Of a stretch of DNA of 64,000 nt, positions 7,458 to 62,614 are shown piece after piece (position 1 is the first letter of the stretch; each line of letters opens with the position of its first letter). The notes under the pieces are model-generated. The model did not search any database. It saw only the letters and a list, made by a program, of their open reading frames with translations, and was not told the origin of the DNA. Location: positions 75,144,001-75,208,000 of the forward strand of contig CM060733.1 in assembly GCA_030704615.1 (NCBI GenBank), given 5' to 3'. The position numbers and the translations under genes were made by a program. This DNA comes from Takakia lepidozioides. Its lineage: Eukaryota; Plantae; Bryophyta.

Positions 7458-7512
7458 GGTGCTATTTCATGAGCGGAATGAGCATGAGCGGGAAAAAAAA
7501 AAGCATGAGCGG
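7458..7512 (+). mobile_element. Orphan left terminus of the ParB-MTase Mutator-like family
   Basis: GGTGCTATTTCATGAGCGGAATGAGCATGAGCGGGA(n)GCATGAGC is near-identical to 8829-8881. Confidence 0.75.
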
Positions 7513-7583
7513 ATGGTTTTCTTCCGAAGTTTCCCTAGCTTTTTTGGAGGTCTACCACCCTCACGACATCACAGGAAGGCGAA

Positions 7584-8272
7584 ATGGTATCTACAGTGGC
7601 CACCCTGTCCATAGACCGCCCTCCTATCTCCCCCATTTCTGCAACCGGTGCCTCGCCAGGTCCAGCCACGAGCGCACAGGGAGGAGGACCTATGTCAAAT
7701 GTTGTGAGTGTGCAAGAGACAGTGCTGGCTGACGTTGTTTTGACTGGCGACATGCGCAAGCAAGCCCTACTGTCACTCACTACAAGTGCGATGAACCACA
7801 CAATGAGCTCTATTTTGCACTCGCCGAGGAATGGGGCTCCGCCAAGAATACCATTATGCAGGATGAAGCCCCTCCCGGCTGTGCGAATGACTGAGCGCCC
7901 TGGCATCAACAAGCTGAAGTTGTATTAGGCGGACAGGTATAACGATGCTCTTGCATCACTTTTTCTTTTTACCAACGATGACGGTGGACAGAGCCAAGAA
8001 ATCCAACAGGCAGATCAGGATGCATGGTCTCTACATTGGCAGGCAGCGGATGCGGCATTTGAGGAAGATATAAAGAACACGGAGTGGGAATTTCTCTCTA
8101 ACAAATGGCTGCACGTCTACGACGGGAATCACAAGTGGTACGCCTGGATGGAGGTAATATCCGAGCAGCATCCAGACGAAGCGAGCTGGCACTACCAGGT
8201 GAATGCAAATATCATGGATGTGAAGAATTCGGATTTGGGGCTCATACGACGTGCAATGAATCGTATGAATGT
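7584..8272 (+). pseudogene. ParB/Sulfiredoxin-like domain exon (family-B paralog of 13216-13720)
   Basis: RIPLCRMKPLPAVR..GINKLK*..WLHVYDGNHKWYAW..WHYQV..AMNRMN; premature TAG at 7926-7928; DGNHK at 8121-8135; GT donor at 8273 in the same phase as in family A. Confidence 0.75.
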
Positions 8273-9045
8273 GTGAGTTTCTATCCCCATTTCTGCTCAC
8301 ATGAGCATAGGTGTCATGTGAGCATAAGAGCTTAGCATTTTGGGGATCTCCATTAGAAAGGGTTGCAGGTCAAGCATAAGTAGTCGTTGTGGGTGACCGA
8401 GGCAGTGGGTGTAATTTAGCAGGTTGCAGCGATGTAGCTTCATTGACTGATTTTTGGATGTGATCCTCTTCCCTAGATTTGGAATGTGCAGTTATAGTCG
8501 GAGCCGACTATAACTGCGGGGGCTGACTTTTTCTGAACCTCCACTACATTCCAATTTATTAATTAGAAGTGCAGGGTGAGAGGGATTCAGAAGTAGTGCC
8601 AGGTGAGAGGGAGTTGTGAGAGTGGAAGGTTACTATTCCTATTCTGAGGCCTGCCTTATTACAACAGTTATGATCTGCGTCGACTATGGCAGTTTAGGTG
8701 CAGTTTGTGGAGTCAGAATTCCACAGCTTTAACTATGTCATTCATGCCCGGCTGTGTGTCTCGCCCTGGCGTCCACGTGTCCATTTTTAAACCTGCCTCC
8801 GTCCACTTTTCCGCTGGCCACTCTCCGGGCTGCTATTTCATGAGCGGCATGAGCATGAGCGGAAAAAAAAAAAGCATGAGCAGACCATTGTGAGTCCACG
8901 GAAATAGGGTCAGGAGGCACGGAAATAGGGTCAAGTGAAGTTGGAATGTGGCACCAGTGGACTTGAAATGCAACATTTTATTGCAAATTTTGTGGCAAGC
9001 CACGTCTATACAAGTGTGTTCTAACTGTCATAGCCGGAATGGGCA

Positions 9046-12000
9046 CTACTCTCCTACACCCTCCGAGGAACTTGCCCCACCTTCTTCCTCATCCCCCTCA
9101 TCCCCCTCGTCCTCCGAGCTCTGTGATGCATCAGTTCCACTATGCCTCTCAAAAATCCCGTCCTCTCCTTGGGGGACTGTCCACCTCACCTCCTGGGAAT
9201 CTTCTGCGTCTTCTCCCCCACTTTCCTCAGCAGAATCCAAGACAAATCTACGAGCCCGACGGGCTCTAATAGCTGCTGCCTCCTCCCTCATCTTCATTTT
9301 CTTGAGGCTTGCCTCGTCTAAAATCTGCTGTACATGACTACGTTCGGAACACCTCCTAATGGACACCGAAGCAAGCCGGGCAGCATAAGTAGGAAGGATG
9401 TACTCCCTTTCTGGACTAGGCATGAAATCCCCCCTGGCAAAAAAAAGCACGTTCCTCCTGCCCATGAACTCCGGTGTAGACGTCCCTCCGGCAGTACTTG
9501 GCATCCTACAGTAAGAACAAATCCACTTCAAGAATGTCAATACCAGCACAACCACAAAGGGTTTTCAATGAAATAAGAGAGCGAAGGGAGGTGCCTCACA
9601 AAATCTGGAGGCAACTTACAATGCCACCACTCACTCGTAAACCGGGGGCTCCTCGGCCTCGATCCCAACTTCCTCCCCCTGCTCCTTCTCGGATTCTTCC
9701 TCATCCTCCGAGGATGCCTCTTCCTCTTTCGGCAGACGTTCAGCCGCTGCAAGTTCGGAGTTGTGGAGGGCAGTATCTGGCTCGAAGGCGAACACATGCC
9801 TGTCGGACAACGTCCCTGCCCACATTGAAGCACCTGAGGAACAAAGCGGGCGGTTAATAGCTTGCGGCATGCAATTGCAATCGGGCCAGGGGACAAACTG
9901 AGCACGTGAAGGCTTACCCGTGCCACATGTGAAGTCCAGAATCCGCCCTTGGACATCCGAGCACGTCTCCATGAGGGTTTGGATGAAAGCAGGGCTCCGG
10001 GTCCGGCTGTACCGCCACGGTTTGCCTGTCTTTGTGCCCTTCGGCATACTAGAGTAGGGCACATAGTTGTAGAGGACATCGTAGGTTACAGGGTCCACAG
10101 CGGCATCAACAAGACGACCGTCGTTGCGGAATTTGAACGTAGACCCTCTCTTCACAAAGCAATATGCCTCAAACACCAATGTCTGCACATCCAACAAAGA
10201 AGGGATCAACTCCAGGGTCTACTTAACATACACCACAATATGAAGTGAATGCAATAGATTGATAACTTACACTTTGGCCCTCTGTTCGCAACCCCTGTGT
10301 ACTGATGCAGAACCATTTTCTGAGGAGGACCGGGGTGACACTTTTCGGTGTCCACCTTGCCACCGCATTCTCTGTGGTCTTCCCTCTCGTGGCAAGGACA
10401 ACCACACATCCACCGTCATCCAGAAGCATCCCCGCCAGCCCAAACCCGGCTTTCCAGTAGTCCTCAGTAAACCTGTTCTAGGTGGGCACACCATCCAGGC
10501 CCTCCAACAGCTCCCCATCTGGAATGTCGAGGAGAATCATGTCGCAAGCTCTCTCCACCTCAACCCCCCCCCGAGTGCTCTTGCAATTCGTGCTCACAGC
10601 CGTGAAAAATTCCATCATGGCTTCAAAACCAGGGGTGTCTTTAGGCTCTGTACCGCCAGCCCTCTTCTTGGCTTTCCCCTTCTGCTCCGCCAGAGACTTG
10701 TTGTGTGCCACCTTCTTCACCCTGGCAGCGAGAGCGTCAAGGAAGCTCTCATTGACGCATTGGATGATGGTTGGAGGTTCTAGCTTTGGCCTGTGCGTAA
10801 ACGTCACCGCCGTATACCGCCGTGTAGGCTCGCCCTCAAATGCCAACTTCTTGGCAGAGCCAGTCCCACTCCGAACTGACTTGGGAACCCGGACGACCGG
10901 TGACTGGGTAGGAGCAACAGCAGTCGCAGGACCTTGAACAAAGTCGTCGTCCGAGTCACTCTCTTGGGTCCCCTCCTCCGCCTCCTGCGATGCCCCGATG
11001 GTTTTCTTCTTTTTGGGTGTTACTGCACTCACCTGTTTCCTTGTCCTTTTCCTTTGGCCTTTACTCTTCTCATGCAATTTCTCCTGAATTCCTGCCTGAG
11101 CAAGCTCTGCCGCTTTCCTGGAATTCGCAAGCGTTTTTGCCTCTTTTGCACCCAACGGAGGCAGCGGAGCCCGGTTTCGTCGGAATTCAGCATCCAGCTT
11201 CAATTGAAACTCGGATGGGTCGAGCGAGCCGGGCGGAAGGTCCACATACCAAGGGCAATCACGCAAATGTTCCAGATGCCACTCCTTCACAATATCGTCA
11301 GTGTACATGGAGTCAGCCCCAGGGTTCCTCCATGCCAGGAAGAATAGTGGCTCGAAAGACAGATGACCTTTCTCCAAAAGGGAGAACTTGCAGTACCTGC
11401 ATTCATGAAAAACACAATGAGGTCCCTGAAATGCATATTCCGCACCATTTTCCCAGGTTGGGGCGGATGTGAGTGGGCCTAGAAATGGAAAAATGGCGCT
11501 GAATTTCGGTTTTCGGTGACTCCCACCCTAGGAAATTCGGCGCCGTTTTTCCCGGTTTGGCCCGAAGATGGCTAAGTCCCAGAACTGCAATAGGGCCTAG
11601 AACTGGAAAAATGGCGCCGAATTTCCAGTTCAGGTCCAGCCACCCTAGGGACTTAGCCCGAAAATAGCTAAGTCCCTGAACGGCAATAGGGCCTAGAACT
11701 GGAAAATGGCGCCGAATTTCCACTTCAGGGCCAGCCACCCTAGGGACTTAGCCCAAAAATGACTAAGTCCCTGAACGGCAATAGGGCCTGGAACTGGAAA
11801 ATGGCGCCGAATTTCCAGTTCAGGGCCAGCCAGTCTAGGGACTTAGCCATTTTCGGAGCCCTGACTGGAAATTCCGCGCCATTTTCCCTAACACCACATG
11901 AGGCCTCTAACATCTTGAAATGCAAGGACTTGAAAGAAAGACAACGCGTATGTACCTGTACAGAAGGCGCATTGCTGCTTTGTCCGCGTTCGGCTGGTCG

Positions 12001-13720
12001 GTGAACTCGTGGCTCCGGCGAGCATCTGCTATCTCCCGAAAGAATAGGTTGGTTTTGTAGAGCAGAAAGTACCTCGTCACATAGTCACGTAGGCTCTCTG
12101 CTGCAGGAGATATCTCCATCTTGAACTGATGTGCTTGTGTGTCCAGCTGCTCTTGCGCATTCGTCGTCACCTGTGGAGATTCTCCATCAGATCGCTTTCC
12201 TCAAAAAATACAATGAATCCACCCCCTACTAGAGTAGAAGCCCAAACGAAGCGTGGGGAAGTACCTGAAACCACCATGTCATGCGGTTCATCCACATGTC
12301 GAATGTGGGGTCAGAGAGTTTGTCCAGTTTGGGGAAGCTCCACATGTCCTTGGTACTTTGGGAACCATTCCAGATTTGGAGCCACCGGGTCTGTCCAACC
12401 ACCCAGCATATTCGTAAGCGCCAAACACCACAAAAAGGAGTTGTTGCCACCACAATTTGGTTAAGAATGTATCACCTTTTCTGTTGCATCCACACAGGAT
12501 GTGGCTAGACGATGGAGCTTCTCCAATGTCATCGTGGGCTTCAGAGCGCGAGAGTAGTGCTTCCCCACCTCCACCAGAAAGTCGGCACCAAGGGCGGGAT
12601 CAGCTATGGCCACGTACTTTACCATCCGCGACTTCTACTTTATGCGGGCCCTCACCTCCGTAGCTTTGACATACGATTCGAGTTCCGGGAGGGTTGGATT
12701 CGACTCCTTTGACTCCATGTAGAACCTCCGCGCATGTGCCAAATCCTGCTGTATTTTCGTCTGTCAAGAATGCGCACATAAGATTAGAGATCCTGCTCAA
12801 CACAATTTCTTCTATTGGGGGAGGAGATTAGAAATCACGGCGAAGACCTTTTCTTCTATTGGGGGAGGAGAGACAGATTAGCTCAACAAAATTGTCAGGA
12901 GCTTTACCCGAAATATGTAGTCCACCATGGAGTCGACGCTCAGCCTATACCAGGTTCTGTCTGCCTTTGCCTCCGACTTGCGCAGGAGGTCGGCACTGAG
13001 GGAATTGGCAAACTCTTGCACCCCCTGCTTCCCGACATCCTTCACTCGGAAGAGCATATGGGACAAGTTGGTGGCAATGAAGGCATTCTCAGTCACCCTG
13101 CAGTGCCACATTTCCATGAAACAATACTGAAATGGGAATTTCCATCATATATGAGGATTCGCAATGAAATGACTTCCAAATTCAAAGTCCAAAAGCGAGA
13201 GGGGTTGTAGCTTACGAGTTGATGTCGGCCATTGCAGCTTTGAGAAGACTGCGATCTTTGGGCCCCGCAACCTTCAGCACAACACAATCCACGGCGAAAT
13301 GCCAATCAAGGTCGTTGGGGTGGGCTTGGGCAATGTGCTCCATCCATGCCAGGACGCGATGATTGCCGTCCCACACGTAGAACATCTTACCGGACAAGTG
13401 CTGGAAAAGAGGATCACTAGCAATCGATCTCTCGAACTCCTCATTTCGCGTTTGCCAATGGGGACCCCATTTGTCCACCTCATCAGAAGTGTGGGCACGG
13501 GAAGCTCCGTGGTCGTTCTCAATGGAAACGTAAAACGCGGCAGACCCCATTCGATATCCATCCCGGAAAGAGAATTTCAGCTTGTCGATATCGCCTGGGA
13601 GGGCAGGTCTCACCACCTGCAATGACACCAAGCGGCAAAGGGGAATTCGAAGCTTGGCCGGGTACACCATGCCCCCCAGCACCCTGCCAATGTTGCTGTG
13701 GGTTGCCTCCAACATCTTTG
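9046..13720 (-). CDS. Multi-exon gene: ParB/Srx-like domain + beta-class N4-cytosine/N6-adenine DNA methyltransferase-like domain; some frameshifts; further 5' exons possible up to ~14220
   Basis: FYVWDGNHRVLAW (13356-13370); CDMILLDIPDG (10517-10528, DPPY position); splicing the 84-nt GT-AG intron 9917-9834 gives SPAFIQTLMETCSDVQGRILDFTCGTGASMWAGTLSDRHVFAFEPD (motifs X-I-II); other GT donors at 13215, ~10270, ~9635. Confidence 0.8.
11480..11885. repeat. Intronic tandem repeats with GAAAATGGCGCCGAATTTCC and GGGACTTAGCC/GGCTAAGTCCC motifs
   Basis: About 6 GGCGCC-type palindrome copies between predicted exons. Confidence 0.85.
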
Positions 13721-14529
13721 GGCGATTCAAACATGCGATGAGTTGGAGCTGTCGATGATACCACCAGCGTGCCGGGCTCGTCGTCACTCTGTCATTGACA
13801 AAAATCGTGAAAACCAACATCGGTGCAAAACCAGCATCGCAACGAGCAGCGCAACCACCATAGCAACAATCGTGTAGCAAAAATGAAAACATAACAAGTT
13901 TAGGAAGTATGGAGAGCCATGCAACAACAATGAAAACAAATGCAACCATTGCCTGAGAATGACATGCACAAGCAGCCTTCTCCAGAGCTGCCGGATTTGC
14001 ACACGCATTGCAAACAATCTAAGGTTCACTCAACTATCTAAAGTTCATCCAGCGAAGCCAGGATGAAGATGCAAAAACAAAGCGAGGTAACAAAGCGAAA
14101 GCAAAAAAGAAATCGAACAAATCGAAAGCAGAAGTGGCTTGCCTGAGAGTACTCGGCTTCAGTTGGCGCGGGTTGTGAGCAAGACACTGGAATCTCCTGC
14201 TGGAGCTTCAGTTTGGCCATGCAAGAGATTGGCCGTCGTCCGTAGTACAAAGCTTTCAACTTCCGCCGCGGTCTGGATGTGAGGTCTCTCTCAGGAGAGC
14301 CACGCCCTTCAGGCGGCATAAGTCCCAGCCAAAAAGATCTCCGTTTTTGGGGTACATGCCTCGAATAGCATGTTAAGCCAAGATTAGCATGAGATTTAGG
14401 GTACGTATCCAGGAAGCCATGTGTCGCCAGCCCGAATGAGAACCGACGGCGGTGGACATTTATTGCCCAACTGCGCAATTAAATGTCGGATGAAGCCCTC
14501 CATGTCGGATGAAAATCGACGTAAAGAGG

Positions 14530-16400
14530 CCCGGAATTTCCAACGTAGACGTAATTCGGAGCGCTGCACGATGGAATTCCGGCGCCGGATTTCCATCCTG
14601 CAGGTAATTTGGAGCGCAGCAGGATGGAAATTCAGCGCCGAATTTCCATCCAGCAAGGTAGGGCGGCGCTGGAAATTTCCCTCACGCAGGTAATTCAGAA
14701 GCGGATGGATGGAAATCCGGCGCCGGATTTCCATCCGCAAGGTTGGGCGGAGAGCGGATGGATGGAGAACCGGCGCCGAATTTCCATCCTGCAGGTAATT
14801 CGAAACCCCGATGGATGGAAATCCGGCGCCGAATTTCCATCCAGCAGGTAAGTCGGATCGCTGGCGTATGGATATTCGGCGCCGAATTTCCATTCACCAG
14901 GTATTTCATCGCTCAGAATTACCTTCCTGCAGGTAATTCTCATCGATGAACTACCTTCCTGCAGGTAATTCTGATCGATGGATTACCTTCGTGCAGGTAA
15001 TTCTGAGCGAGGAATTACCTTCTTACCTTCATCGAGCAGAATTACCTGCAGGAACGTAATTCTGAGCGATGAAATACCTGGTGAATGGAAATTCGGCGCC
15101 GAATATCCATACGCCAGCGATCCGACTTACCTGCTGGATGGAAATTCGGCGCCGGATTTCCATCCATCGGGGTTTCGAATTACCTGCAGGATGGAAATTC
15201 GGCGCCGGATTTCCATCCATCGGGGATTCGAATTACCTGCAGGATGGAAATGCGGCGCCGGATTTCCATCCATCCGAGATTCCACTTACGTGCTGGATGG
15301 AAATTCGGCGCCGGATTTCCATCCATTCGGGATTGCACTTACCTGCTGGATGGAAATTCGGCGCCGAATTTCCATCCATCGGTGATTCGAATTACCTGCA
15401 GGATGGAAATTCGGCGCCGGATTTCCATCCATCGGGGATTCGAATTACCTGCAGGATGGAAATGCGGCGCCGGATTTCGATCCATCCGGGATTCCACTTA
15501 CGTGCTGGATGGAAATTCGGCGCCGGATTTCCATCCATCCGGGATTGCACTTACCTGCTGGATGGAAATTCGGCGCCGAATTTCCATCCATCCGGGATTC
15601 CACTTACCTGCTGGATGGAAATCCGGCGCCGAATTTCCATCCATCTGTGATTCGAATTACCTGCAGGATGGAAATGCGGCGCCGGATTTCGATCCATCCG
15701 GGATTCCACTTACGTGTTGGATGGAAATTCGGCGCCGGATTTCCATCCGGGGGATGGTCTCTGTCGGAGAGGTGCCGGCCTCTCCGCCGCTCTGTTGGAT
15801 ATTCGGTGCCGAATTTCCGTCCGGGGGTTGAAATATGACGGCCAGGTGCCGACCTCTCCCCCCTCCCCGACTGCATTGGAACGGCCCCGGATTGAAATTC
15901 GGCGCCGTTTTCCCATCTGGGGAGGTTTTTATGTCGGCCAGTTTTCGGTCCGACCCCCCGACACGACTTCCTTTGGGAGGGCCCGGATGGAAATTCGGCG
16001 CCGAATCTCCATCCAGGGGATGCTCTCTGTCGAACACGTACCAACCTCTACGCCCGAGGCGACTTCATCCGGGCGTCTCCTGTTCGATATTCGGTGCCGA
16101 ATTTTCCGTCCGGGGGTTGAAATGCGACGGCCAAGTGTCGGCCTCTCCCCCTCCCCGAGTGCATCCGAACCGCCCCGGATGGAAATTCGGCGCCGTTTTT
16201 CCATCTGGGGATGTTTTTATGCCGGCCAGTTTTCGGCCTGACCCCCCGACACGACTTCCTTTGGGGGGGCCCGGATGGAAATTCGGCACCGAATCTCCAT
16301 CCAGGGGATGTTCTCTATCGCACACGCGCGCCGGCCTCTGCGCCCGAGGCAACTTCATTTGGGCTTCCCTGTTGGATATTGGGTGCCGAATTTCCATTTG
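14530..16400. repeat. Palindrome array GGATGGAAATTCGGCGCCG(A/G)ATTTCCATCC: 53-bp tandem units, then ~290-bp higher-order units
   Basis: Unit spacing 15137 to 15190 = 53 bp; dozens of copies. Confidence 0.95.
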
Positions 16401-16644
16401 GGGGTAGTAATGTGACGGCACGGTGCCGGCTTCTCCCCTTCAGCCGTCATCATCCGGACGGCCCCCCACTTTCTGACTGCATACCGTTGGCAGTTATTGC
16501 GCAAAAGACCAGGGGCCGCATTCCGGAGACAAGGTTCATTAACACTCTGACTGTGGATTTTTGAGATAGTTGGCTCCCTGGATTTGGATCAGGCTTCGTC
16601 GCTCGGACAAATCGGCATCGCATTCATTCCCATCGCTGCATACC

Positions 16645-17362
16645 TGACGCACACCTCAGTTCGGTAAACTCCCCTTCAAGTCATAGTTACTCGCTTTGAT
16701 GCGCGCGCCTGACTCCCAACCTGGCCGCCGGCCAACTTGGAGTTTCGGCTGCTCACCGGGACATAACGGTCCCTTCCGCTTCCCTCTAAACCTCCACCTA
16801 TTTGGGACTAGGAGAATTCCCTTTGGTAGATGGCAGTCCGGAACAGCTCCCCACTCTTTGGTCGCTTTCCGGCTCGCTCGCTTACTCACTAGTTTTTGGT
16901 CACCAACGGGCTTGCACCGTTCTCGGGGTTACTACTCCCTATATATACTTCTGTAGCTGTCCGCGGGGTTTTCATAACCAGCCATGCCATTTTATGGCGA
17001 ACCACCACGAAAACCCTCGACTCCCGGTGGTGAGCCGCGGTGAGTCTTGGCCCACTCACCGCGGCCCCAATGGACCGTGATGAGTCCAAGACTCCCCACG
17101 ACTCCCACCTCGAGGTCTCCACCCCATGGTGAGTCCTATGCCACCCCCACTAAGTCCCACTAAGCTACCACCACCCCTTGTGGAGCCACCTCCACCGCAA
17201 CCCGGCGTGCGGGGCTCCACCTAGTGAGCGCCTCCGCCTCCTTGAGTGCCTTGGGCACTCAAGGGTGCTTCAGCCCCCCATACCTATCGCTGCCGCTGCC
17301 CCCACCACAGGGCAGCCCCTCATGTGTCCCGACCCCCTGCCCTCAAGGCAAGGGCCGCGACA
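16645..17362 (-). repeat. 3' LTR of the chromovirus; PPT-like GGTAGGGGTGTG adjacent at 17363-17374
   Basis: Direct repeat of 22861-23569. Confidence 0.93.
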
Positions 17363-18265
17363 CACACCCCTACCAACAGGGAGTCGATGTCCTCATCGAC
17401 TTGTCCATTTTGTAGAAACGAACATCCAAGTTGTGGCGTCCCACATCAAGGAGTTTGTTTCCGTACCATGGCGTCCCATGGCAAAGAACCAAACCCCACA
17501 CTTGACTCCACTCTCCACTAGCTAGTTCGGCCGACTTCCTCCAAGTCCCGGCCAAGGGTGGAGCCTCTCCAGCTCCTCCCAGTGCACTCTTCTTGGCCTA
17601 CTTCAAGGCCAAGGAACGATCCTCCCCGAGGATCGAATCGCCTTACTGCAACACATTGCTTGCGATCGCTCATGATGCCGCTTTTGGCATCACCTTGAGC
17701 AAGGGTTCACCTGGAACCCTCTTTGACTAGGAAGATAACCTTGAACCAACCGTGCGCCCCAATCACTACAATTGGGTCCGCCTTGGAATGCTGGCCTGAG
17801 GTACGGGAACACGCCGAAGCCGCACTACGACTTCGTCCCGAGGCTACACGATTATAGTACGTGAACGGAAGCACGTAGCTTCCGCGTTAGCCCGCACTAC
17901 AAGGCAACCCCCTCGGTAGCGCAGTTATAGTACGCGCACGCGCCAGGTGCGCACTAGCACTTGAACTCCCAAATAAGGCGCAAGTTTCCTTGCCCTTGGA
18001 TGGGAGTCACCCGATTTCGGCACTGCGCAAACACACGATTAACCCAATTTACCTCTCCCACTTTTGTAAGCTAGCATGCATTCTACACACCAGCCAACCA
18101 CACCATGCATCACCATTCCAAACACAATAGGACGCACAATATTTGGAACCCATTTCCTTTATCACAAATTTTTGTACAATACAAGTTTTTGCAATCGGAT
18201 TCCTGAGCTAGCTAACCGGGCTAAGCATGCATTTCCTCCCCCACGCTCCAAGGTTGATGTCCCCA

Positions 18266-21200
18266 TCAACGCTTCTTCCGCTTTTGAGGTCGCCCTTCGA
18301 ACGCTGCAACCTGCCTCGGATGCGTTTCCCATTTCTGAGGCACGCACCCAAGATGCCTCCACAGATGATAGCCCTTCCATTTGACGAGATACTCCGTTTC
18401 TCGGTTCTTGAACCTCCTCGACTTAAGTATTGCCTCCACCTCGTACTCGGGTTCATTTTCATGATCCAACAGCATAGGTGGCGGACGCAACACTTGCTGC
18501 CGATTCGGACGTGCTTCATCTTTGAAGTAAGGCTTCAAAAGGGAGACATGGAATACTGGGGCACCTTGCTGTTTGCTGGCAGCTCCAATTCATAACACAT
18601 CCTCATTCATAACCCCGAATGCGAAAGGGACCCGCATACGGAGGTACGAACTTCGGACTCATTTCCGGAGGTAGTCGAAAATTCTTGATGTTCAACCAGA
18701 CCTCTGTGCCTGCCTCAAACTTCACTTCCCTCCGCTTCCGATTCGCCTGCCTTTCATACCGTTTCCTAGCTTTGGCAATGTTGTACTTTGCGAGCTTCAA
18801 CAAACGCTCGCTGTCTTCCAGTACCGCCGCTACTGCCGGTTCCTCAACGTCCTGGGCGGCCCAACTTGTCGGCACCAGAGGTGCTTTTCCATAGACCAAC
18901 ACAAAAGGGGAAACTCCCGTTCGCGGAGTGTTCTGTGTTATTATAACAGAACTCTGCCGCGTCTAAGTGTTCCATCCAGTCTGATTGGTCTGCCGACACG
19001 TAATTCCGCAAGAATTGCTTCACTACGGAATTCACTCTTTCCGTTTGGCCGTCCGTCGTAGGTCGGAAGGCGGTGCTCATCTTCAGCCTCGTCCCCATCT
19101 TCTTCCAAAGTGCTCCCAGAAATTTACTCGTAAACTTTGGTCGCGGTCCGAGACAATATCCTTCGGGACTCCATGATGCTTTAAGACGTGGGTGAAGTAA
19201 AGTCGCCCTGTCTCCTGCGCAGTTGCCGTCTATCCTTGGTGGGATGAAATGGCCCATTTTACTGAACCTATCTACCACCACCATGATTGCATCGAATCCT
19301 TTTGACAGCGGCATAGCAGTCATGAAATCCATCGAGACGCTTTCCCAAGTCCCCTCTGGAATCGGCAAGGGTTGTAACAGCCCGCTTGCTTTTTATACTC
19401 GCTCCGGTTTTGTTGGCATGTGGTGCATGTCTTGACATACTCCTCTGCCTCCTCCCTCAGTTTGGGCCAGAAATACTCTTTCTTCAAGAGTGCCGCAGTG
19501 CGCTTGGCTCCCCGTGGCCCGCAAGCGGGCTATCATGGCATTCTCTCAAGAGACTATCCTGATCCCTCCCTTTGGCACATAGAGACGTTTTTGCTTATAC
19601 CGGAGCAGTCCGTTTTGCAAGTGGAACTGCGATTTAACCCCGTCTCAAGTTCTGCATCACGGACTTTGCCAGCTCATCCTTCCGGCAAGCCTTCCGGATC
19701 TTCTTTGGAGCGCGTCTCGCCCTTGTAACACCAACAAGAGCTGCTGCTTTCTACTTAAAGCATCGGCCACCATTGTCCGTCCGGTTTGTACTGGATATCC
19801 ACGTCGAACACTGCCAAAGTATCTTGCCACCTAAGTTGTTTTGGGGACAACTTGGGCTGCGTGGCAAAATATTCACCGTGACATTGTCCGTGAACACCTT
19901 CACTGGGTTGGAACCAACATAGTGGCGCCAGAGTTCAAGGCAATGTACCACCGCCTTCATCTCTTTTTCGTGCGTCGGCCACGTCGCTCCACTTCATTCA
20001 GTTTCTTACTTTCGTAAGCCACTGGACGTCCATCTTGCATAAGTACACCCCCAATTGCGAGTCCGATGCATCTGTATGAATCTCAAACGGACCGATCGAA
20101 CTCCGGGATTTTAAGACTGAGCTTCCGATCATCCGCTGCTTCAATTCAGCAAAAGCTTGGCCACAAAATGTGTTCCATACCCGACTTTGGATTTACACAG
20201 AAGGTCCGACAGCGGCCCGCGATCTTGGCGAAATTTCTCAATACTTCCGGTAATAGGAGGCGAGTCCTAGGAAGGATCGCACTCCCGGGACCGAAGTCGG
20301 AGGCTCCCAGTCCAAGATCGCCCTCACCTTTCTGTCATCCATTTTGATCCCATCCTGTGTAATCACATGCCCCAAGAACTCCACTTTTGTGACCCCGAAT
20401 TCGCACTTTGAAGCTTTGGCATACAGCTTCCCTTCTCGCAATTTTTGGAACACCCTTTTGAGGTGCTCCAGGTGCTCCTCCTTTGTTTTCGAGTACACCA
20501 AGATGTCGTCGATGTACACGATCACAAAGTCATCCAACCACTCCTGGAAAAGGCTGTTCATCAGCGTGCTAAATGTCGCTGGTGCATTGGTGAGCCCAAA
20601 AGGCATCACCAAGAACTCATATGAACCATACCTTGTCCTGCACGCGGTCTTCTCCTCATCTCCTTCCGCCACCCGAATTTGGTGATAGCCGGAGCGCAAG
20701 TCGATCCGGCTGAAATACTTCGCTCCTGCCAACCGATCGAAGAGGTCGTCGATCCTTGGCAAAGGGTACCGGTTTTTGATAGTCACCTTATTCAGAGCCC
20801 TGTAATCGACACACATCCGCAGCGTCCCATCCTTCTTGTCTGCAAATAGCACCGGGGCTCCGTAAGGTGACTTACTCGGCCGGATGTACCCCTTTGACAT
20901 TAGATCTTTGAGCTGAGTCTTCAGCTCGACCAACTCTTTGTGGCTCAACCGGTAGGGCGCCTTGGCAGGCGGTTCCGATCCCGGTATCACCTCAATTTTG
21001 TGGTCAACTCCTCTTCGCGGTGGCAAGCCGCTTGGTAAATCCTCCGGCATCACATCCTGGTATTTCTCCAAAATCCCCTTGATCCAATCTGGGCTCGGCT
21101 CCCCATCGCCTTCTCCTTTCACTTCTCTAATGTAAAGCAAAAACTGGGACTCGTGTGCCTCCTCCACGGCCCACTCCTTTGCTGATAGAAGGTTTATTCG

Positions 21201-22868
21201 CCCTCCCACGGATTTGGGCGTTTCCGACACTCGTAAAACCTCGCCACCATTCCCACATGGCAGCGTGACTACTCTCTTGCGGCCATCTATGACCGCTCCG
21301 GATTTGCTCAAAAAGGTCATCCCAAAATGAGATCCACTCCATCGATCTCGCAGATAGTGAAGTTCTCACGTCCCTCCCAACTCCCCAGTTGAAGAGGAAC
21401 ATCAAACGCCAACCTTGTCGCCAACTGAGGTTCTCCTTTGGCAGAGCGCACCTCAATAGAGGCCCCCACGTCACTTGTCGGGAGTCCCAACTTTCGCGCC
21501 GCCGCCGGCGTCATGAAGGAGTGCGACGCTCCTGTGTCCACCAACAACGACACATTAGTTCCGGATATTATCCCATCCACGAACAATAACTGACTCCCTT
21601 TTCGTAAGGCGCCAGTTTCCTGATACAACTCACAAGAAAATTTGCCTACCTTGCAAGTCCTGGCGACCACCGCTTCCACCAAGCGACTGATGGTATCTTC
21701 CGACAGCTCCGTGGTCGCCCGAGTCATGTTCAATTGCCGGGGCTTCGTGCACTTCTTGGCCATGTGCCCGGGCTCCCCGCAATTGAAACACACTCCATCA
21801 AAGGTCGCCTTCTGTCCGCCATAAGTCGCTCCACCCGCTTTTCCTTTCGAAGCACCGGGTGCCGCCTTGACGTGTGAAGGCCCTCCCTTCGATTTCCACG
21901 TGCCATTTTCGCCGCGTGGCCTATCCCACTTCTTTTCCGGTCGGAGGAGTCACCTTCCCGCCGGGTCTTCTTGTGGTTCAGCTCCGTACGGCCTTGTCTC
22001 TCACCCCTAGGGACATCCGAGAAACATTCAGCCTCTCAATTGCCTCGTTCAAAGTCTTGGGTGGCTTCTCTCCAACTTCCGCCTAGCCCATGGGGCCAGT
22101 CCCGCCACAAAGTTGAAGACCATTTCTGGTTCTGCCATGTCCGCGACTTCGAGCAACAGCACATTGAAAGCCTGGACATACCCCCGAATGTCATCTGTTT
22201 GCTTCAAATTCCTCATCTTGTCCCGGGCAAGCCAGGACGCGTTGAGGGGCACAAACTGTCTCTTCATCAATTCCTTGAACCACTCCAGTTCAAGGTTTCC
22301 GGGCTTGGGCCTCGGTCGTGAAGGCGTTTCTGCCACCATTGTTGAGCATAGCCCCTCAAATAGGTGGGAGCCACTTCCACCCGATCCTCGTCACTCAACT
22401 TGGCCGCCCGGAAGTACTGCTCTAGCTCCAGGAGCCAGGTGTTGAGTGCCTTCCGTTTCGAACGCCCTCGAAGGTGCCGGGTTCCTTAGGCTTCACCTTA
22501 AACTTTGCCTTGGTGGAAGTGGCATTAGCCGCCTTCAACACGTCTTTCAACGTCCCGCCAAACTGCGCCAACAACCCTTCCCAAAAAAGGCATGCCGGCA
22601 TGGAGGCATCTCTTGGTTTGTCGGAGCTCTCAAAGATTCCTCGGGCTCCGACTCCTCGGATTTCCCGCTCCTGAGCGGCCTCGTTTTCGGAAACATTAAT
22701 CGCTTCCTCAAACGGCCGCCTCGGTGACACGTCCCCCCCATCGGGCTCACCGGGATCATCATCTTTTGGGCCGTTCCGCTTTCGCTTCGGCTTGCCCGAC
22801 CCCATGATGAGGCCAATCCCAAGGACGATCGCGTACTGAACTCTAAGCTCTGATACCAAGTGTCGCAC
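18266..22868 (-). pseudogene. gag-pol of the chromovirus (frameshifted)
   Basis: CFNCGEPGHMAKKC knuckle; LVDTGA protease; YIDD RT (20238-21320); integrase SMDF..DGQTER; chromodomain EYEVEAILKSRR..EYLVKWKGY. Confidence 0.93.
22847..22858 (-). promoter_or_regulatory. Primer binding site, initiator tRNA-Met
   Basis: TGGTATCAGAGC on the minus strand, 2 nt from the 5' LTR. Confidence 0.92.
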
Positions 22869-23569
22869 ACCTCGGTAAACTCCCCTTCAAGTCATAGTTA
22901 CTCGCTTTGATGCGCGCGCCTGACTCCCAACCTGGCCGCGGGCCAACTTGGAGTTTCGGCTGCTCACCGGACATAACGGTCCCCTTCCGCTTCCCTCTAA
23001 ACCCTCCACCTATTTGGGACTAGGAGAATTCCCTTTGGTAGATGGCAGTCCGGAACAGCTCCCCAACTCGTGTCGCTTTCCGGTCGCTCGCTTCACTAGT
23101 TTTTGGTCACCAACGGGCTTGCACCGTCTCGGGGTTACTACTCCCTATATATACTTCTGTAGCTGTCCGCGGGGGTTTCATAACCAGCCATGCCATTTTT
23201 ATGGCGAACACCAGCGAAAACCCTCGACTCCCGGTGGTGAGCCGCGGTGAGTCTAGCCCACTCACCGCGGCCCCAATGGACCGTGATGAGTCCCAAGACT
23301 CCCCACGACTCCCACCTCGAGGTCTCCACCCCATGGTGAGTCCTATGCCACCCCCACTAAGTCCCTAAGCTACCACCACCCCTTGTGGAGCCACCTCCAC
23401 CGCAACCCGGCGTGCGGGGCTCCACCTAGTGAGCGCCTCCGCCTCCTTGAGTGCCTTGGGCACTCAAGGGTGCTTCAGCCCCCCATACCATATCGCTGCC
23501 GCTGCCCCCACACAGGGGCAGCCCCTCATGTGTCCCGACCCCCTGCCCTCAAGGCAAAGGGCCGCGACA
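22861..23569 (-). repeat. 5' LTR of the chromovirus
   Basis: TG..CA termini; adjacent PBS. Confidence 0.93.
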
Positions 23570-26569
23570 ATACCCCTTCTACCAGGGAGCTTCCCCGCAC
23601 GCCATCCTGGCAGTCTTGTGTGCACATCTCCCATGGCGGAAAACCCGAGCGCTACAGTGTACTGCCCTCCTCACGAGCATAGAGCTTCATTTCCGTGCAG
23701 AGGGGACATCTGCCGGGTGATGGAGAAATATCTGTGCGTTCGATACCACCTGAAACCGGGTCGGTTTTTTGGAGGAGGAAAGGAATGACTCTAACGGCCT
23801 TGTTGTCGAGAGTATTGTTGTGATCCACGATGATTTCGGCGATGGCAGGAATGACGAGTCCACCATCGGACAGCGTCATATACAGGGCTGTTGGGGACTT
23901 CATTTGCCCGCCAAATGCACCTTCTATCCTGGCGCCTTCCACGAAACAATCCGCGAATCAGAGTGGCTACCTCAAAGAGAGAAGTCCGCAACGAAGTAAA
24001 TCCAGAGCCGAACCCATCCATGAAGACGAGCGAGAAGGGTTGTTCACAACCTGTCCGACTCAGACGAGGTCATGGAAGTTCCGAGGTCGTCCTGGAGATC
24101 AGGCAAGTCCTCAATGGACGTCAGTGGAGGAGGGAGTCATATTCCCAGCACGAGCACCGCAATTCGATCTATTCTTGAAATTCTGCGAGGGCTTCACCTG
24201 GAGGGACACCGGTCGGAGCTGGCCGGGCTGGACTACAGCAAGTTTGCAATTAAATCGGTTAAATGCCTTCCGCCGACGTCGACGGTAATATCTTCTTTGA
24301 GTTCCCTCCTCGGGCGGACTACTCGAGGGCGTCCGGAATGTTGACAGATATGGATAGAAAACATGACGGTCATCCTTGGTGCGTTACCGAAACCACCAGC
24401 ATGAAGATGCTCGATGGTGTGCGGGTGCGCTACGTTGTTTGTGCGGGCGCGTTGCGGTGTTTCCCCAACTTGCTTCCACTTTAAATCCAGAGGTCACAGG
24501 AACGAGACCGATTGGACAGGCACAGCTCATCAACCATTTTGAGCTCAGGAGAAGGTTCCGAACTCCACATTTAAGTGTGCGCATTGCAAAGAACCACCAC
24601 ACTGCATGTCTGTTTGTAATGCCAAGCAGTTCTATGTGTTGCACCGTTTCCCTGACCTCACCCGAGCTTGCATACACGTTGGTTCCCATTGTCACAAATT
24701 GGCGAGGGGAACTCGCGGGAGGCTGCCCACGAAGCAGAGCTCGTTCAGGAGGAGGTTAAGTTGAGACCGGGTGCCAAACCCAAACAGATACAGCTCCAAG
24801 CCGCCCATAAGATGGCATTGGCCAGAATTATGTCGAAAGACGGCTCCGATAGAGTTCCTCTCGACGAGAAGGAAATGGAGGCATGCTGGAGTCGGTGTCC
24901 CACGTATGTTCACCGAATGTACAAAACCACATTGTCTCATGCAAACAGAAAATTGGGCGTGGCTCGGATATGCACTCCATTCTGGGAGGTGAAGCGACGA
25001 TGTGGATATGACTACATTCATGGAAGTAGGTTTCCAGGACAAGGGACTGAGGCAGATCGTTGTTTCGTATCAAAATGTCCACGTGTGGACCTGGCAGCGG
25101 CGTCGAACTGGTCGACAGGATGACGAGTGGGAACTTGTCAAACAGTTGGGTCATGTTCGACCATATCAAGCGAATTACAAATCACCAGTGGGTGACAATG
25201 GGTGCACATGTCTACGACACCCACTGCAGGATGCTAATGACAATTGCTATTTGTGAGATGAAAGGAGAGGACACACAATCGGAGATGCTTCTTTGCAGGG
25301 AATAAACGAACAGATGGCCAAGGCGGGATTGCCCCCTCCCAATTTCCGTGGTTTCATGGCGGACAACGCACAAGCAAATTGGGCTGCCATCCAAAGGGTG
25401 TACGGGCAAGACCCCAATGTTCCCATGGAAGGCAAGGAGAGATCTTGTGGGTTCCATTTTCTGCAGAGCCTTTCGCAGTACACAACCAGGCTCGTGGCGC
25501 CAGATTTCAGAGAGGAGCACCGTTCCATGTGCCTTGCGTGGAAGCGCGCTCCCACCTTGGATGATGCAGAATCACAGTTTGCATGCATACGAGCTTGGTG
25601 GACATCGTCAGGTGCTGTAAGGAAATCAGACGAGAGAGCAATGGTCAGTTGGCTAGCATGGTGGCATTATCGTTTCCTCCAGTTCGGCGACTATATGCGG
25701 GAGGTGAGTTGCACGAATTTGCGTCCCGTTGAATATTATTCTTGGCCATATTTGTAACTTGCTTGTAACCTGAACATGTGCTTGTGCAGGAAATGTGTCT
25801 CGACTCCGACACCGACATGCCCACGACAAACATGGCCGAATCAGTGCACTCTTCCTGGCGTGCCTCCTCTGCAGCGCATCTAGTGGACATCCTCACTACC
25901 ACAACGAAGGACATTGTGAGGTCAATTATGCAGCAATGCAGGTACAACGAGTTCTTGAAAGGGAAACAGTGGGGCTTGGGGCCGGACAGGCAGGAAATGC
26001 TGATGCGGACTGCCTCTAGATCAAAGAATCCTCGGAAGTGGGCGGCGGCCTTGCGAGAGGGCCTTCGGGACACGCCATTGCTGCGAAGAGGCCAACATCT
26101 GGAAGGAGATGTTCATACCCGTCCAGTGAGACGAAGACTTGACGAGGCACCTGGCGGAGAAGAGGATTCATGGCAAGCTGACAAGAATATTCGCACGCTC
26201 CCTCGTGGTCCGGTGATGTTGCCCGAGGAGGTCTCGTCGAGCACCGCAAGTCCTGCACGTTCAAGATCGCCATCTCCTTTGAGCACAGGGCGCGTGCCCC
26301 GGCAACATAACGAGCCATCTGTAGTAAAGCAGTACAACATTCCCATTGTGGAGACAAGAGTGTCGGAGTCACAGTGGAGAATTGCGAGGACATTGCCGGC
26401 ATTTCGAGGGAAGTGCTGCGCCCATCCGGTGGATACGAGAGCACGCTGTGGTGAGATGATTCGGAGGAACCCACACGGTGCTGTACCTGCACCTTGTTTC
26501 AGCGGCAGATTTTTGACTCTCACATTTGCTTACGCCACAACGCAGACATTTTGGTTCTGTAGGCACGAC

Positions 26570-27010
26570 ATGCACTGGTACCTGTGTCTGGGAAAATGGC
26601 GCCGAATTTCTCTTTTTTGGGCCGAAAACTGGCTAAGTCCAACATGCACTGGTACCGAAAAAATGGCGCCGAATTCTCTTTTTTTTGGCCGAAAAACTGG
26701 CTAAGTCCCAACATGCACTGGTACTGTCTGGAAAAATGGCGCCGAATTTCTCTTTTTGGGCCGAAAAACTGGCTAAGTCCCAACATGCACTGGTACAGTG
26801 TCTGGAAAAATGGCGCCGAATTTCCCTATTTTGCGCCAAAAACTGGCTAAGTCCAAACATGCACTGGAAAAATGGCGCCGAATTACTTGTCATGAGGGGA
26901 CCTATAGCCGCGGAATTCGGCACCATTTTTCGCCAGAGAGACCTATTACCGCGAAATACGTCGTCGTTTTTTCAGGTTACGGACCCTATTACCGCGAAAT
27001 TCGGCGCCAT
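26570..27010. repeat. Subterminal tandem repeats (~70 bp) with AAAATGGCGCCGAATT and GGCTAAGTCC
   Basis: Same motifs as 11480-11885 and 62400-64000. Confidence 0.85.
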
Positions 27011-27319
27011 ATTTGCACATGTCGCTGGGAATTGGCATGAGCGGAAGACGAAATATCATGAGCACAACTGTCAAAACTGCAATTTTCCCTTCAAGGGGAC
27101 GAATAATATATTTTTGTTTTTCCTGACACATTGCATTAAATTATTGTTTTTTATTGTTTTTTATTTTCGAAATTTGTACTTCTGCTCATGAAAACCGATT
27201 GTCTTACTACTCTGCTCATGCCGCTCATGCCGCTCATGCTCATGAAATAGCAAACCTCCTCTCCGGATGTTAACCCACGTCCACCTGTCACTGATCCTAT
27301 GGACTGTGTATCCCTGGTA

Positions 27320-27582
27320 GGCTGTGTTGAGCTGTGACAGGCTGTGTCATACTGTGGTACGCTGTGATATGTTTGTTTGCACTGTGGTAAGCTGTGATAG
27401 GCTGTGACACGCTGTGGTAGGTTGTGATAGGCCGTGTCACGCTGTGATGGGCTGTGATAGGTGTGACACTGTGATGGGCTGTGATAGGTGTGACTGATGG
27501 GTTTTGATAGGCTGTGCCACACTGTGATGGGTTGTGATAGGCTGTGTGACACTGTGATGGGTTGTGATAGGCTGTGCCACAC
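27320..27582. repeat. Minisatellite (CTGTGATAGG/CTGTGACAC-like)
   Basis: Directly visible short tandem repeats. Confidence 0.8.
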
Positions 27583-30500: not shown

Positions 30501-31543
30501 TTGTCCAACCAGTCACCACTTCATCCTGTAAACTCACAGTGGCTGGTTCCTCTAGGATTTCCATTTCTCCTTCTCTTTCATAAAAATGTGTGGTGGGTAA
30601 CTGCTTATTTCACCCTCAATTGGTGTTGTTGTCACTACACCACAACAGATACCTTTTAAACAACTTAGGCCTTCCAGTTGCAGCTCTGCAACCTGTTCCC
30701 ACTCTGGATGTGCAGCGAATAGGGTAGCTTCCTGCTCCTCATCCAGTCCTCCCCTCCAGTCATACTCCCTGACCCCTCGAGGTCTTCTCGTAGCAGGTAA
30801 TCTACTAGATTTCTTAGTGGTAATTTGTATCTTGTGCATCCATTATGCACAGTTAGTAACTGGGAATTCCAGTCATGGAATACCCTGGCCTGTTTTCAGC
30901 CACGGACGTCCCAACAATAAGGAGTAAGCTTCCATGACTTCATCCATTTTTAACACAGTTACTGTGATCATAAAGATCATCTTTTGAATCTGTATCTTAA
31001 CTCCTCTTATCAATCCCAATGGCTGTACACTTCTTTGATCTGCCATTGTTACTGTAAATGGGGCTGGTTTCATGTTACTTAGACCAAGCTTCTGCCTTAA
31101 TTGGTCTGTCATGATATTCACTCTAGAGCCTCCATCTATCAGTACATCAGTTAGTTCTGTGCTTCCAATTCTCAATTGGATTACTGGCATAGAATCATCA
31201 AAGTCCATGACTGCTTCTCGCCCTTCCGGCTTCACATTATAACTAGTCACCTTGCTGTTCAGGTCTGTGTTTCTTGTCACATGGGCAATTCGATTGATTG
31301 CTTGATACAGCCTGTGTCTACAATAAGGTGCCACAGCCAATAGCTGTCCAATGGTAATCTCTGCTTTGGTCTGGCAAATTACTTCAGCCAAAGTCCCTTC
31401 ATTACTCTGCATGTCTGCAACTTCTTTCTTCCTTTCATCCTCACTCACTTCTTCTTCTCCATCAGAATCAGATGAATCTGCCATAGGAATATCAGTACTC
31501 TTCTGCATTTCCCTTATGGTATCTGCCACTTCTTTGTGCAGTT

Positions 31544-31881
31544 TGTCAAGTTAAATAAGCACAGTGTGAAAACAGCTAGAATAAAACTAGTTATTTGTAT
31601 TTAACACTTGGATTTAGGTCAAGTGTTAAATCAGGTGTCAAGTTTAGTTTGACACCTGGTCCGTCTTATCTTCACGAGAGCGGCAGTCGCGCAGCTCATC
31701 TCTCTCGAGTTGAGCCTGCGCGACCGAGCTCCTTCATGTGCTTATGATGGGAGTGTAGGTTGTTGTGGGGTGGAGTCCCCATAGCTTGGGGTGCCCTTGG
31801 CTCGACTTCTGTTTTAAAGAGTGATAGCGATGGATTCATGTTGTTTCTGGTGTGAGCAGTGTGTTTTCTAGTTTTCTTATC
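31544..31881 (+). repeat. Terminal repeat A1 (338 bp) with two internal hairpins
   Basis: Near-identical to 42977-43313; TTTAACACTTG..CAAGTGTTAAA and CAGGTGTCAA..TTGACACCTG. Confidence 0.93.
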
Positions 31882-31898
31882 ACTCGAGAGAGATGAGC
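31882..31898 (+). promoter_or_regulatory. Putative self-priming PBS
   Basis: ACTCGAGAGAGATGAGC is the exact reverse complement of 31694-31710 inside repeat A; no tRNA-type TGG start. Confidence 0.7.
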
Positions 31899-31956
31899 GT
31901 TATCTAGTGTGCTGGTGCTAAGCTAGATACAATGTTTGTTTTTAGCACTATTATAA

Positions 31957-32400
<444 letters not shown>

Positions 32401-33067
32401 TAAGCAGCTGCGCAAGAGCTGCAAAGCTGGGAAAATGTTGACGAGGATGCTGCGACAGCAACCAAACCCTGCAAGCCATAACCAAATTTGTGGCCGCTTG
32501 AGCAGGAAGTAGGGAATAATCAGGTGTACAAGTCATGTGGGGCCTCTCTGTTTCGGGAGAGACGTCTTCAAGATCAACACTCGCTTGTGAGGGAGCAGGA
32601 GCCAGCGCAAGGCAGGGGAGGTGAATCAATCCAGAGACGGCGTTTCTCTGAGAGGTGAATCAATCCAAAGACGGCGTTTCTCTGAGAGGTGAATGCCATC
32701 GGAGATACACTGTCCACAAACTGCATCCTGAAGAGATTGTCTGCCCAGAACGTAGCGGTAAATTGCGAGCTGGGTTGTAGTGTTAGGCAACTCGATGTCG
32801 GGGGCTGCTGCAGAGCGGCAGAGCGGCAGATGCACTCCAAAGTAGTGGTTTGCAGGAAGAGAAGTAGCAGCTCATGTGGTTTGAGGGTCAGGCCCGCAAG
32901 AAGACTTACAGTTATCTAGTTATACACGTCCTGAATCGCATGTCGTCCGTGCTGCACCATTGGGGAGTCCGGTCTCATTAAGGGGGCCAGCTTGAAGCGC
33001 AGGTCATTGGGCTGTGTGTAGTGCCATCCATACTTAGGTATTTGGGCCTCAGGAACCAACAGCAGGG

Positions 33068-47245: not shown

Positions 47246-47256
47246 GTGGTGGACAC

Positions 47257-62581: not shown

Positions 62582-62614
<33 letters not shown>

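Follow-up and report, generated by a model that had tools for sequence, protein, structure and literature searches.

The 64,000 nucleotides of Takakia lepidozioides DNA analysed here, called the window throughout (contig CM060733.1, assembly GCA_030704615.1, forward-strand positions 75,144,001 to 75,208,000), contain a bounded element at 8829-27258, 18,430 bp in length or about 11.5 kb once a retrotransposon nested within it is subtracted. Its unit is complete and consists of a minus-strand gene (13715-9046) that joins a ParB/Srx-like domain to a DNA methyltransferase-like domain, a divergently oriented partner gene, which we call Y (24275-26701), and an array of palindromes lying between the two (14528-16644). 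The first of these genes is the main subject of this study. An earlier reading of the same DNA, hereafter the original prediction, had described it as an intron-bearing fusion of ParB/Srx with a beta-class N6/N4 amino-methyltransferase; gene model, fold and profile evidence bear this description out.

Three-frame translation of the minus strand, with conserved open reading frame (ORF) blocks chained through GT-AG sites, yielded a gene of nine exons (13715-13216, 13097-12908, 12760-12476, 12390-12265, 12170-11956, 11396-10271, 10182-9918, 9833-9635 and 9505-9046) and eight GT-AG introns, which measure, in order, 118, 147, 85, 94, 559, 88, 84 and 129 nt. The joined exons total 3366 nt, a length divisible by three, hold a single frame across 1121 codons and close with a stop codon at 9048-9046. 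The predicted protein opens with the ParB/Srx-fold domain, passes through a helical and low-complexity middle of roughly 550 residues and ends with the beta-class N6/N4 amino-methyltransferase-like domain. Removal of the 84-nt intron (9917-9834), which had been proposed at the outset together with its product, gives exactly the expected ILDFTCGTGASMWAGTLSDRHVFAFEPD. An intronless homologue (10969-11418 of locus L001, from assembly ERZ25073694 of the European Nucleotide Archive, ENA) aligns gap-free and position for position with the 28 residues of that product, so this splice is independently supported. A tandem repeat that carries variant half-palindromes, GGAAAATGGCGCCGAATTTCC, occupies 11475-11848 in intron 5, and the last exon encodes a C-terminal tail motif, EREYILPTYAARLA (9411-9370, minus strand), which tblastx matches to L001 11601-11675 and which is also present in the Riccia sorocarpa proteins P0216, P0217 and P0213.

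The closest relatives of the window gene are found in a liverwort and in ferns. Two collinear stretches relate the gene model to the 1207-residue Riccia sorocarpa protein P0207 (window residues 23-491 against 175-661, E 1.5e-24; 718-957 against 953-1191, E 4.6e-6); the model is also collinear with L001, and the order of the conserved blocks is identical in L001, L005, L006 and L007. Among deposited gene models, P0207 and P0197 (1191 residues) of Riccia unite both domains, and the Adiantum models are shorter. Both domains can therefore be placed on one predicted transcript, as the frame is continuous over eight introns and the Riccia models join the same two domains.

The ParB/Srx-like domain is encoded by exon 1 (13715-13216, minus strand), with the motif WDGNHR at 13373-13356. 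Fifty-seven relatives of this exon fell inside the length window of a homologue search, and 1184 were recovered at E<=1e-3 from a library of 1.84 billion representatives. Across 49 homologues, residues D116, G117, N118 and H119 never vary, with R120 conserved to 90% or more. The octapeptide DGNHRVLA (residues 116-123) fits the pattern G-x-x-R-x-x-A of a phosphate-binding loop, a type represented by ParB box II, by GCHR in Srx and by DGQHR in DndB; by inspection, we take it to be the equivalent of ParB box II. The window exon has no sequence match in Pfam, NCBIfam or the PDB sequences (the last searched by phmmer and by the family profile), and Pfam returned for the 49 relatives faint traces alone, of the ParB-clan families DUF1015, DndB and DUF6551, at E 0.09 or worse. 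An AlphaFold2 model of the exon, computed with the family alignment as input, reached a predicted local distance difference test (pLDDT) value of 87.5 and a predicted template modelling (TM) score (pTM) of 0.84. When it was compared with the PDB by Foldseek, ranks 1 to 45 were occupied entirely by the ParB/Srx superfamily (Noc, Srx, PadC, ParB, KorB, SbnI and Atu1540), with modest E values of 0.016-0.8, probabilities up to 1.00 and TM scores of 0.31-0.45. The ParBc match looked for at the level of sequence profiles was thus not found for the window exon, but the fold claimed by the original prediction came through the structure search, and on the strength of the predicted structure we accept that the N-terminal domain has a ParB/Srx fold.

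For the C-terminal domain, a homologous-protein search with the methyltransferase exon (9634-10218) gave no match, probably on account of its length window and word seeding; the ParB exon search supplied the relatives instead, and the C-terminal fragment P0208, used as a query, added 26 further Riccia proteins. Pfam reported nothing relevant on any of the eight ORF pieces of the window gene, PF01555 (N6_N4_Mtase) included. Two relatives exceed the PF01555 gathering cut-off of 26.7, P0210 with 31.7 bits and P0216 with 27.0 bits over profile positions 16-217, and six other relatives fall below it at 19.8-26.6 bits; the profile match sought for the window gene is seen in these two relatives and not in its own pieces. 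NCBIfam, run on both domains, contributed one weak match of 17 bits to a DNA methyltransferase subfamily. Against the PDB sequences, the family profile found M1.HpyAVI (E 5.4e-4) and CcrM (E 0.011) with the motif I block aligned, and in CcrM the alignment additionally covers the block after motif IV. The stretch DFTCGTGAS...VFAFE of the window lines up with DPFMGSGTT...FIGIE of M1.HpyAVI, with the S-adenosylmethionine (SAM) loop and the acidic residue present; this is the region of the bacterial-like motif I pattern noticed at the outset.

The structural comparison for this domain used a Riccia relative, P0207:915-1180, and not the window protein. Its AlphaFold2 model is of low confidence (pLDDT 51.9, pTM 0.54), and Foldseek matched it to M1.HpyAVI (8.7e-8), CcrM, M.BceJIV, MboIIA, N4CMT (6e-5) and RsrI, with E values extending to 1e-4; MT-A70 proteins came next in the ranking, behind these beta-class amino-methyltransferases. 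The order of motifs agrees. The motif IV position, DMILLDIPDG (10543-10514, minus strand; residues 724-733, of which DIPDG is 729-733), lies 165 residues upstream of motif I, ILDFTCGTG/AS (9942-9826, minus strand; residues 895-905, with FTCGTG at 898-903), which is itself split by the intron 9917-9834. This is the beta-class circular permutation that had been predicted, and P0216 aligns in the same order. Judged through its relatives, by profile alignment and predicted structure, the C-terminal domain belongs, as a distant member, to the beta-class N6/N4 methyltransferase fold and shows the permutation expected of it.

In UniRef, Riccia P0205, P0207, P0208, P0211, P0212 and others carry the label 'Trimethylguanosine synthase', which looks like a mis-annotation. 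We rejected the name, as Pfam gives solely PF01555 and the motif order is opposite to that of TGS1, where motif I stands ahead of motif IV. Two further members are fused in their gene models to entries named profilin (P0229) or haem peroxidase (P0233) and are probably chimeric predictions.

The catalytic motif of the family is unusual. When the sequences are aligned to the family profile, the window has DIPDG at the motif IV position, L001 and L007 share DHPHG, L008 shows DVPDG, and Riccia members carry DLPTG or DMPSG; Riccia P0210 has DLSSR. The second proline and the aromatic residue of (D/N/S)-P-P-(Y/F/W/H) are absent from every member examined. The non-canonical motif IV reported for the window copy thus proves to be a family trait, with a consensus of D-x-P-x-G and never DPPY. 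It had further been suggested that DIPD is a decayed DIPY. The two are indeed one base apart, and the copy has decayed by two stop codons, but DIPD itself is not a product of that decay, since the D-x-P-x-G variant is ancestral to the family. In motif I, G-x-G is retained in the window (DFTCGTG) and in Riccia (DFAGGWG), and one or both glycines have been lost in L001, L007 and L009 (DISASTRAS, DISASTGAS and DCTVSTGK); strand 2 is still followed by the acidic residue (VFAFE, FIGFE, CIVAE). As D-x-P-x-G replaces DPPY and the SAM-loop glycines are gone from several members, a pseudo-enzyme or an enzyme with altered chemistry appears likelier than a standard writer of N6-methyladenine (6mA) or N4-methylcytosine (4mC).

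The window copy of the gene is dead and has no function of its own. Two in-frame TAG codons make it a pseudogene. One, at codon 272 (12637-12635, minus strand), falls inside a conserved block, opposite the Trp of K-W-K in L001 when the register is set by eye; the other, at codon 745 (10480-10478, minus strand), falls past the motif IV position and ahead of the LLDDGG strand. Neither can be removed by any intron, and the second is not intronic because the GT..AG pair around it spans just 14 nt, too short for an intron. No frameshift was found in the gene and the damage to it is light; the element has suffered further from the nested retrotransposon and from broken frames in Y.

The limits of the element, 8829 and 27258, are set by inverted termini and a flanking repeat. 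Both ends share the 14-mer GCTATTTCATGAGC in inverted orientation, a sequence of which the window has four exact copies where 0.41 are expected, and CATGAGC repeats also occur at both. The direct repeat CTCTCCGG flanks the element at 8821-8828 and 27259-27266, corresponding to a target duplication of 7-8 bp. The nested long terminal repeat (LTR) retrotransposon, foreign to the element, lies on the minus strand at 16645-23589, with direct LTRs (16645-17383 and 22861-23589) that are 95% identical and an RVT_1 ORF at 20238-21320 (minus strand).

Three units of the same kind are found within the window. The second comprises a copy of Y (5068-1370, minus strand), with a SWIM-like CxC..(C/Y)xH block in the ORF 2107-1370, and a divergent ParB-like exon (7539-8273, plus strand; 32% identity, one stop, DGNHK), which was detected by tblastn and by hmmsearch with the A1 profile (E 2.1e-27) and is truncated beside the insertion point of the main element. 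The third is partial and inversely oriented (58537-62529, minus strand). Its terminus is at 58545, the piece of Y that it retains covers 59360-58918, and its palindromes are arrayed at 60049-62529; positions 23570-24711 and 60053-58902 are 97.5% identical over about 1.15 kb, and the arrays are homologous too. We considered, and rejected, a single 48-kb element whose subterminal repeats would be the two arrays (14.5-16.6 kb and 60-62.5 kb), given the termini at 8829, 27258 and 58545 and the Riccia loci, where the array likewise separates the two genes. The terminal 14-mer has its fourth exact copy at 7461-7474 (plus strand), and some 60 nt beyond it match the terminus at 8832 with an identity of about 90%. 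The inward-reading, divergent ParB-like exon behind it is unlike the standard unit, and this may be a rearranged or chimeric element that served as the target of the main-element insertion.

Gene Y (24275-26701, plus strand) has several exons with broken frames and was delimited by tblastx and tblastn against the Y genes of Riccia and L001. It is divergent from, and upstream of, the ParB-methyltransferase gene at six loci in three genomes: the window, L005 and L006 of Riccia, and L001, L007 and L009 of ERZ25073694. Its features include a Cys-rich N-terminal module, D..D..E-like motifs, the conserved blocks W-x-x-F-D, G-F-M-A-D...E-R-x-C-x-F-H-W and N-x-A-E-S-V-H-x-x-W, and a C-terminal C-x-C...C-x-H block that resembles a SWIM finger. 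Neither Pfam nor the PDB sequences gave a match to Y, even with an uninterrupted Riccia ORF of 511 residues as query, and for this reason we term it no more than a transposase candidate. The Sola superfamily, to which a brown-algal precedent in Ectocarpus pointed, was not adopted for Y in view of the flanking repeat, as we take a 7-8-bp duplication not to fit Sola. A Mutator-like or a Zisupton/KDZ-like affinity would fit; Zisupton target duplications measure 8 bp (PMC12730594). Past Y, two Riccia loci hold a third small gene of 199-207 residues (L005 2362-3683; L006 1102-2421), with a coiled-coil-like ORF at L006 2255-2626; similarity between these copies is confined to short stretches of DNA.

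The space between the divergent genes is usually filled by a palindrome array that is specific to the lineage. In the window it is built from the 22-bp palindrome GGAAATTCGGCGCCGAATTTCC, repeated with periods of 53 and 96 nt; with at most three mismatches allowed, the window has 60 sites where 0 are expected, and about 24 of these fall in the array at 14528-16644. The L001 palindrome, TCCGTTCGGCGCCGAATGGA (3 sites), shares its core TTCGGCGCCGAA with that of the window, and those of Riccia are ATTCCGGCGAG(S)CTCGCCGGAAT in L005 (9 sites) and CTGCCGGCGGAGTCCGCCGGCAG in L006 (several sites). Variant half-sites turn up within intron 5 of the ParB-methyltransferase gene and on the 3' side of Y. At the right edge of the window, 62366-64000, where the ParB-methyltransferase gene of the third unit would be expected, there is an array with a period of 378 nt, copies 93% identical, poly-A runs and variant palindromes GGAAAAATGGCGCCGAATTTCC.

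Outside Takakia the family is abundant. Riccia has 26 paralogues of the C-terminal domain on several chromosomes, and ERZ25073694 holds at least five loci of the family; the paralogous loci have the whole unit in common, and not just the ParB-methyltransferase gene. Four loci of that assembly (L001, L007, L008 and L009) represent at least three element subfamilies, with ParB domains that are 37-50% identical. Although filed as a metagenome, ERZ25073694 looks like a plant genome, with contigs of 0.18-0.9 Mb, a GC content of 43% (L001) and, at L009, eukaryotic genes of an ordinary kind (UBX, SEP, UBA).

Taken as a whole, these observations are best explained if the ParB-methyltransferase gene serves as the accessory in a cut-and-paste DNA transposon that has two genes and occurs in bryophytes and ferns, an interpretation that we regard as probable. 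Several points weigh against it. One complete element has been seen with both of its ends, and the length of its duplication is ambiguous between 7 and 8 bp. The label of transposase comes from motifs recognized by eye, from linkage and from the element ends, Y being without any profile or PDB match, and Y was not found at L008. No Pfam model matches any piece of the window gene, so that the methyltransferase assignment passes through relatives and a model with a pLDDT of 51.9. Arrays were looked for in L007, L008 and L009 and none was detected, and where palindromes do occur they could instead be transposase sites or promoter repeats.

Two quite different accounts of the gene can be set against its placement in a transposon. 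According to the more sceptical of them, the exon chain would be a chance reading or a wrong joining of two adjacent genes. The blank Pfam result on the gene pieces, and a chain predicted from genomic sequence, leave some room for this; a frame maintained for 1121 codons through eight canonical introns, a block order common to L001, L005, L006 and L007, Riccia models of 1191 and 1207 residues that unite both domains and a conserved C-terminal tail motif make it scarcely credible. The other account is that of the original prediction, in which a host gene was domesticated long ago after transfer from a phage or bacterium and would now work in the cell, either as an amino-methyltransferase of DNA or by reading methylated DNA. 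The architecture of ParB plus PF01555 is typical of phages (PMC12704722), the gene has introns and its family extends, conserved, from liverworts to ferns, all of which count in favour of this account. A domesticated gene should be intact, single-copy and free of transposon structures, and the window gene is none of these. It has two stops and lies within an element that has shared termini and a flanking duplication; it has dozens of Riccia paralogues, its paralogous loci share the whole unit rather than the gene alone, and a transposase-like gene is its constant neighbour. Spliceosomal introns, moreover, are normal in the genes of eukaryotic transposons and are no sign of domestication. A tblastn search of Riccia P0207 against 50,697 phage records returned no match, and a direct donor among phages therefore cannot be named. 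Against old domestication stand the multi-copy nature of the gene, the bounds of the element with its terminal repeats and duplication, and the linkage to Y, seen across three genomes at no fewer than six loci, and we consider it very improbable.

What the intact members do for such a transposon can be approached from their anatomy and by analogy, and here we favour a mechanism of loading combined with a rewired methyltransferase-like domain. The ParB-like module and the region following it would load on the palindrome arrays of the element itself, as ParB does on parS, and the loaded module would then bring the methyltransferase-like domain to element DNA. Once there, that domain would more likely act as a DNA- or SAM-binding pseudo-enzyme, or as an enzyme with altered chemistry, than as a standard 6mA/4mC writer. 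The element would probably benefit by controlling its own chromatin or expression, for instance by evading silencing. In its most specific form the idea becomes that land-plant transposons carry a eukaryotic analogue of ParB-parS, in which a ParB-fold and a rewired methyltransferase-like domain on co-evolving arrays shield the element from silencing by spreading dependent on nucleoside triphosphate (NTP) or by an unusual DNA modification; this form we regard as conceivable but doubtful.

Other functions would suit the same transposon. That the protein actively methylates DNA by means of an unusual catalytic loop, placing 6mA or 4mC on its own element and so, for instance, blocking silencing by 5-methylcytosine (5mC) or marking the DNA for the transposase, is in our judgement unlikely. 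The motif-defining aromatic residue and second proline are missing from all members examined, and the lineages of L001, L007 and L009 have lost SAM-loop glycines; METTL14, with EPPL, offers an analogy in being inactive. Speaking for activity are the conserved D and P of D-x-P-x-G, the acidic residue past strand 2 and the G-x-G of the window and Riccia members, as well as the active enzymes among the fold matches, and the authors of the Ectocarpus study compared below propose the like for their protein (PMC12477816). The ParB-like domain might, for its part, be a nuclease or an NTP-dependent enzyme, in the manner of Srx, SerK and the ParB-type nucleases, and not a DNA clamp, in which case the palindromes would serve the transposase or a bidirectional promoter. 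Its structural neighbours do take in Srx, SbnI and PadC beside ParB and Noc, no helix-turn-helix was identified C-terminal to it, and three loci (L007, L008 and L009) are without arrays. The palindromes, however, vary with the lineage of the protein and hold a constant position between the genes. As they track the protein lineage, a co-evolving site-specific binder would fit, though which protein does the binding is not indicated; we rate the enzyme reading as quite improbable.

The fusion protein and its transposon setting have partial counterparts elsewhere. The giant element Sola1-1_Ec32 of Ectocarpus encodes, on the strand opposite to its transposase, an accessory protein of 1104 residues that is ParB-like and a DNA methyltransferase, and its authors propose that the protein binds and modifies its own element (PMC12477816). 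Likened by description, the two systems have in common a single protein of about 1100 residues with both domains, a gene opposite the transposase and a large DNA transposon; they differ in that the one belongs to a brown alga and a Sola1 transposase, the other to a land plant, with a SWIM-like partner and a 7-8-bp duplication. In red algae, the Plavaka-associated genes (PAGs) include PAG2, which combines PF01555 with SET, and PAG3, which combines a ParB-like domain with a 2-oxoglutarate (2OG) oxygenase and is adjoined by tandem inverted-repeat arrays, and the PAG cassette moves among the Plavaka, Zisupton and Mutator superfamilies (bioRxiv 10.1101/2025.02.11.637652). ParB-like and PF01555 domains are transposon accessories there as here, with inverted-repeat arrays beside the ParB-domain gene, but in red algae they sit on separate proteins together with SET and 2OG oxygenase, whereas in the present family they are fused and neither SET nor oxygenase was found.

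Prokaryotic fusions of ParB and N6_N4_Mtase domains are shorter and intronless and usually have DPPY. They resemble the land-plant protein in having an N-terminal ParB, a C-terminal PF01555 and an association with mobile elements (PMC12704722; PMC5512222), and fusions of this type are enriched in phages (PMC12704722). Marchantia DN4MT1a/b and N4CMT of bdelloid rotifers are likewise eukaryotic beta-class amino-methyltransferases of bacterial ancestry, and N4CMT is among the structural matches; unlike the present gene they are host genes, not transposon-borne, with demonstrated 4mC activity and a canonical catalytic motif, which in Marchantia DN4MT1 is TSPPY (bioRxiv 10.1101/2021.02.12.428880). 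The published descriptions of DN4MT1 and N4CMT mention no ParB domain. A looser parallel is VANC of the Arabidopsis VANDAL elements, which binds short repeated motifs spread across its own element. TET/JBP genes, for their part, reside in KDZ and other fungal transposons (PMC12730594). Both are accessory genes beside a transposase gene and are thought to counter silencing; their folds are unrelated to those described here, where such a function is inferred.

Accessory genes of transposons that act on chromatin are rare, and most, such as VANC and TET/JBP, are known in outline. Accessory proteins with ParB and methyltransferase domains have recently been noted in brown, red and green algae, and the literature searched contains no description of a ParB-plus-methyltransferase family of transposon accessories in land plants. 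The present results place such a protein, with both domains fused in one polypeptide, in abundance among liverworts and ferns, and two of its features render the proposed mechanism testable, namely the lineage-specific palindrome arrays between the genes and the loss of the canonical catalytic motif throughout the family. They also correct the trimethylguanosine synthase naming of several Riccia members and caution that genes of this sort should not be taken for domesticated eukaryotic writers of 4mC or 6mA.

The remainder of the window is repeat-rich eukaryotic DNA of plant type, with numerous tandem arrays, ORFs for Ty3/gypsy reverse transcriptase, RNase H and integrase, and no tRNA genes in its 64 kb. 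Direct repeats of 338 bp (31544-31881 and 42977-43313, 99.7% identical) enclose gag-like (35343-36125) and integrase (41062-41964) ORFs, and 31544-43313 is probably a young Ty3/gypsy element; the minus-strand protease (30873-31529) and RNase H/integrase (28517-29368) ORFs to the left of 31544 belong to another copy. An ORF of 404 residues (56135-57349, plus strand) matches DUF4218 (E 1.3e-30), a domain typical of CACTA/EnSpm transposase genes, and is unrelated to the ParB-methyltransferase element. At the left edge of the window, 1-1104 is a long AT-rich tandem array with A runs and periods of 64 and 121 nt, and just outside the right end of the element, 27318-27583 is a tandem array of the CTGTGAYAGG type, with units of 10, 20 and 30 nt. 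Two further repeat pairs join 17090-17784 with 54341-54998 (88.5% identical) and 45539-46271 with 46506-47247 (94%).

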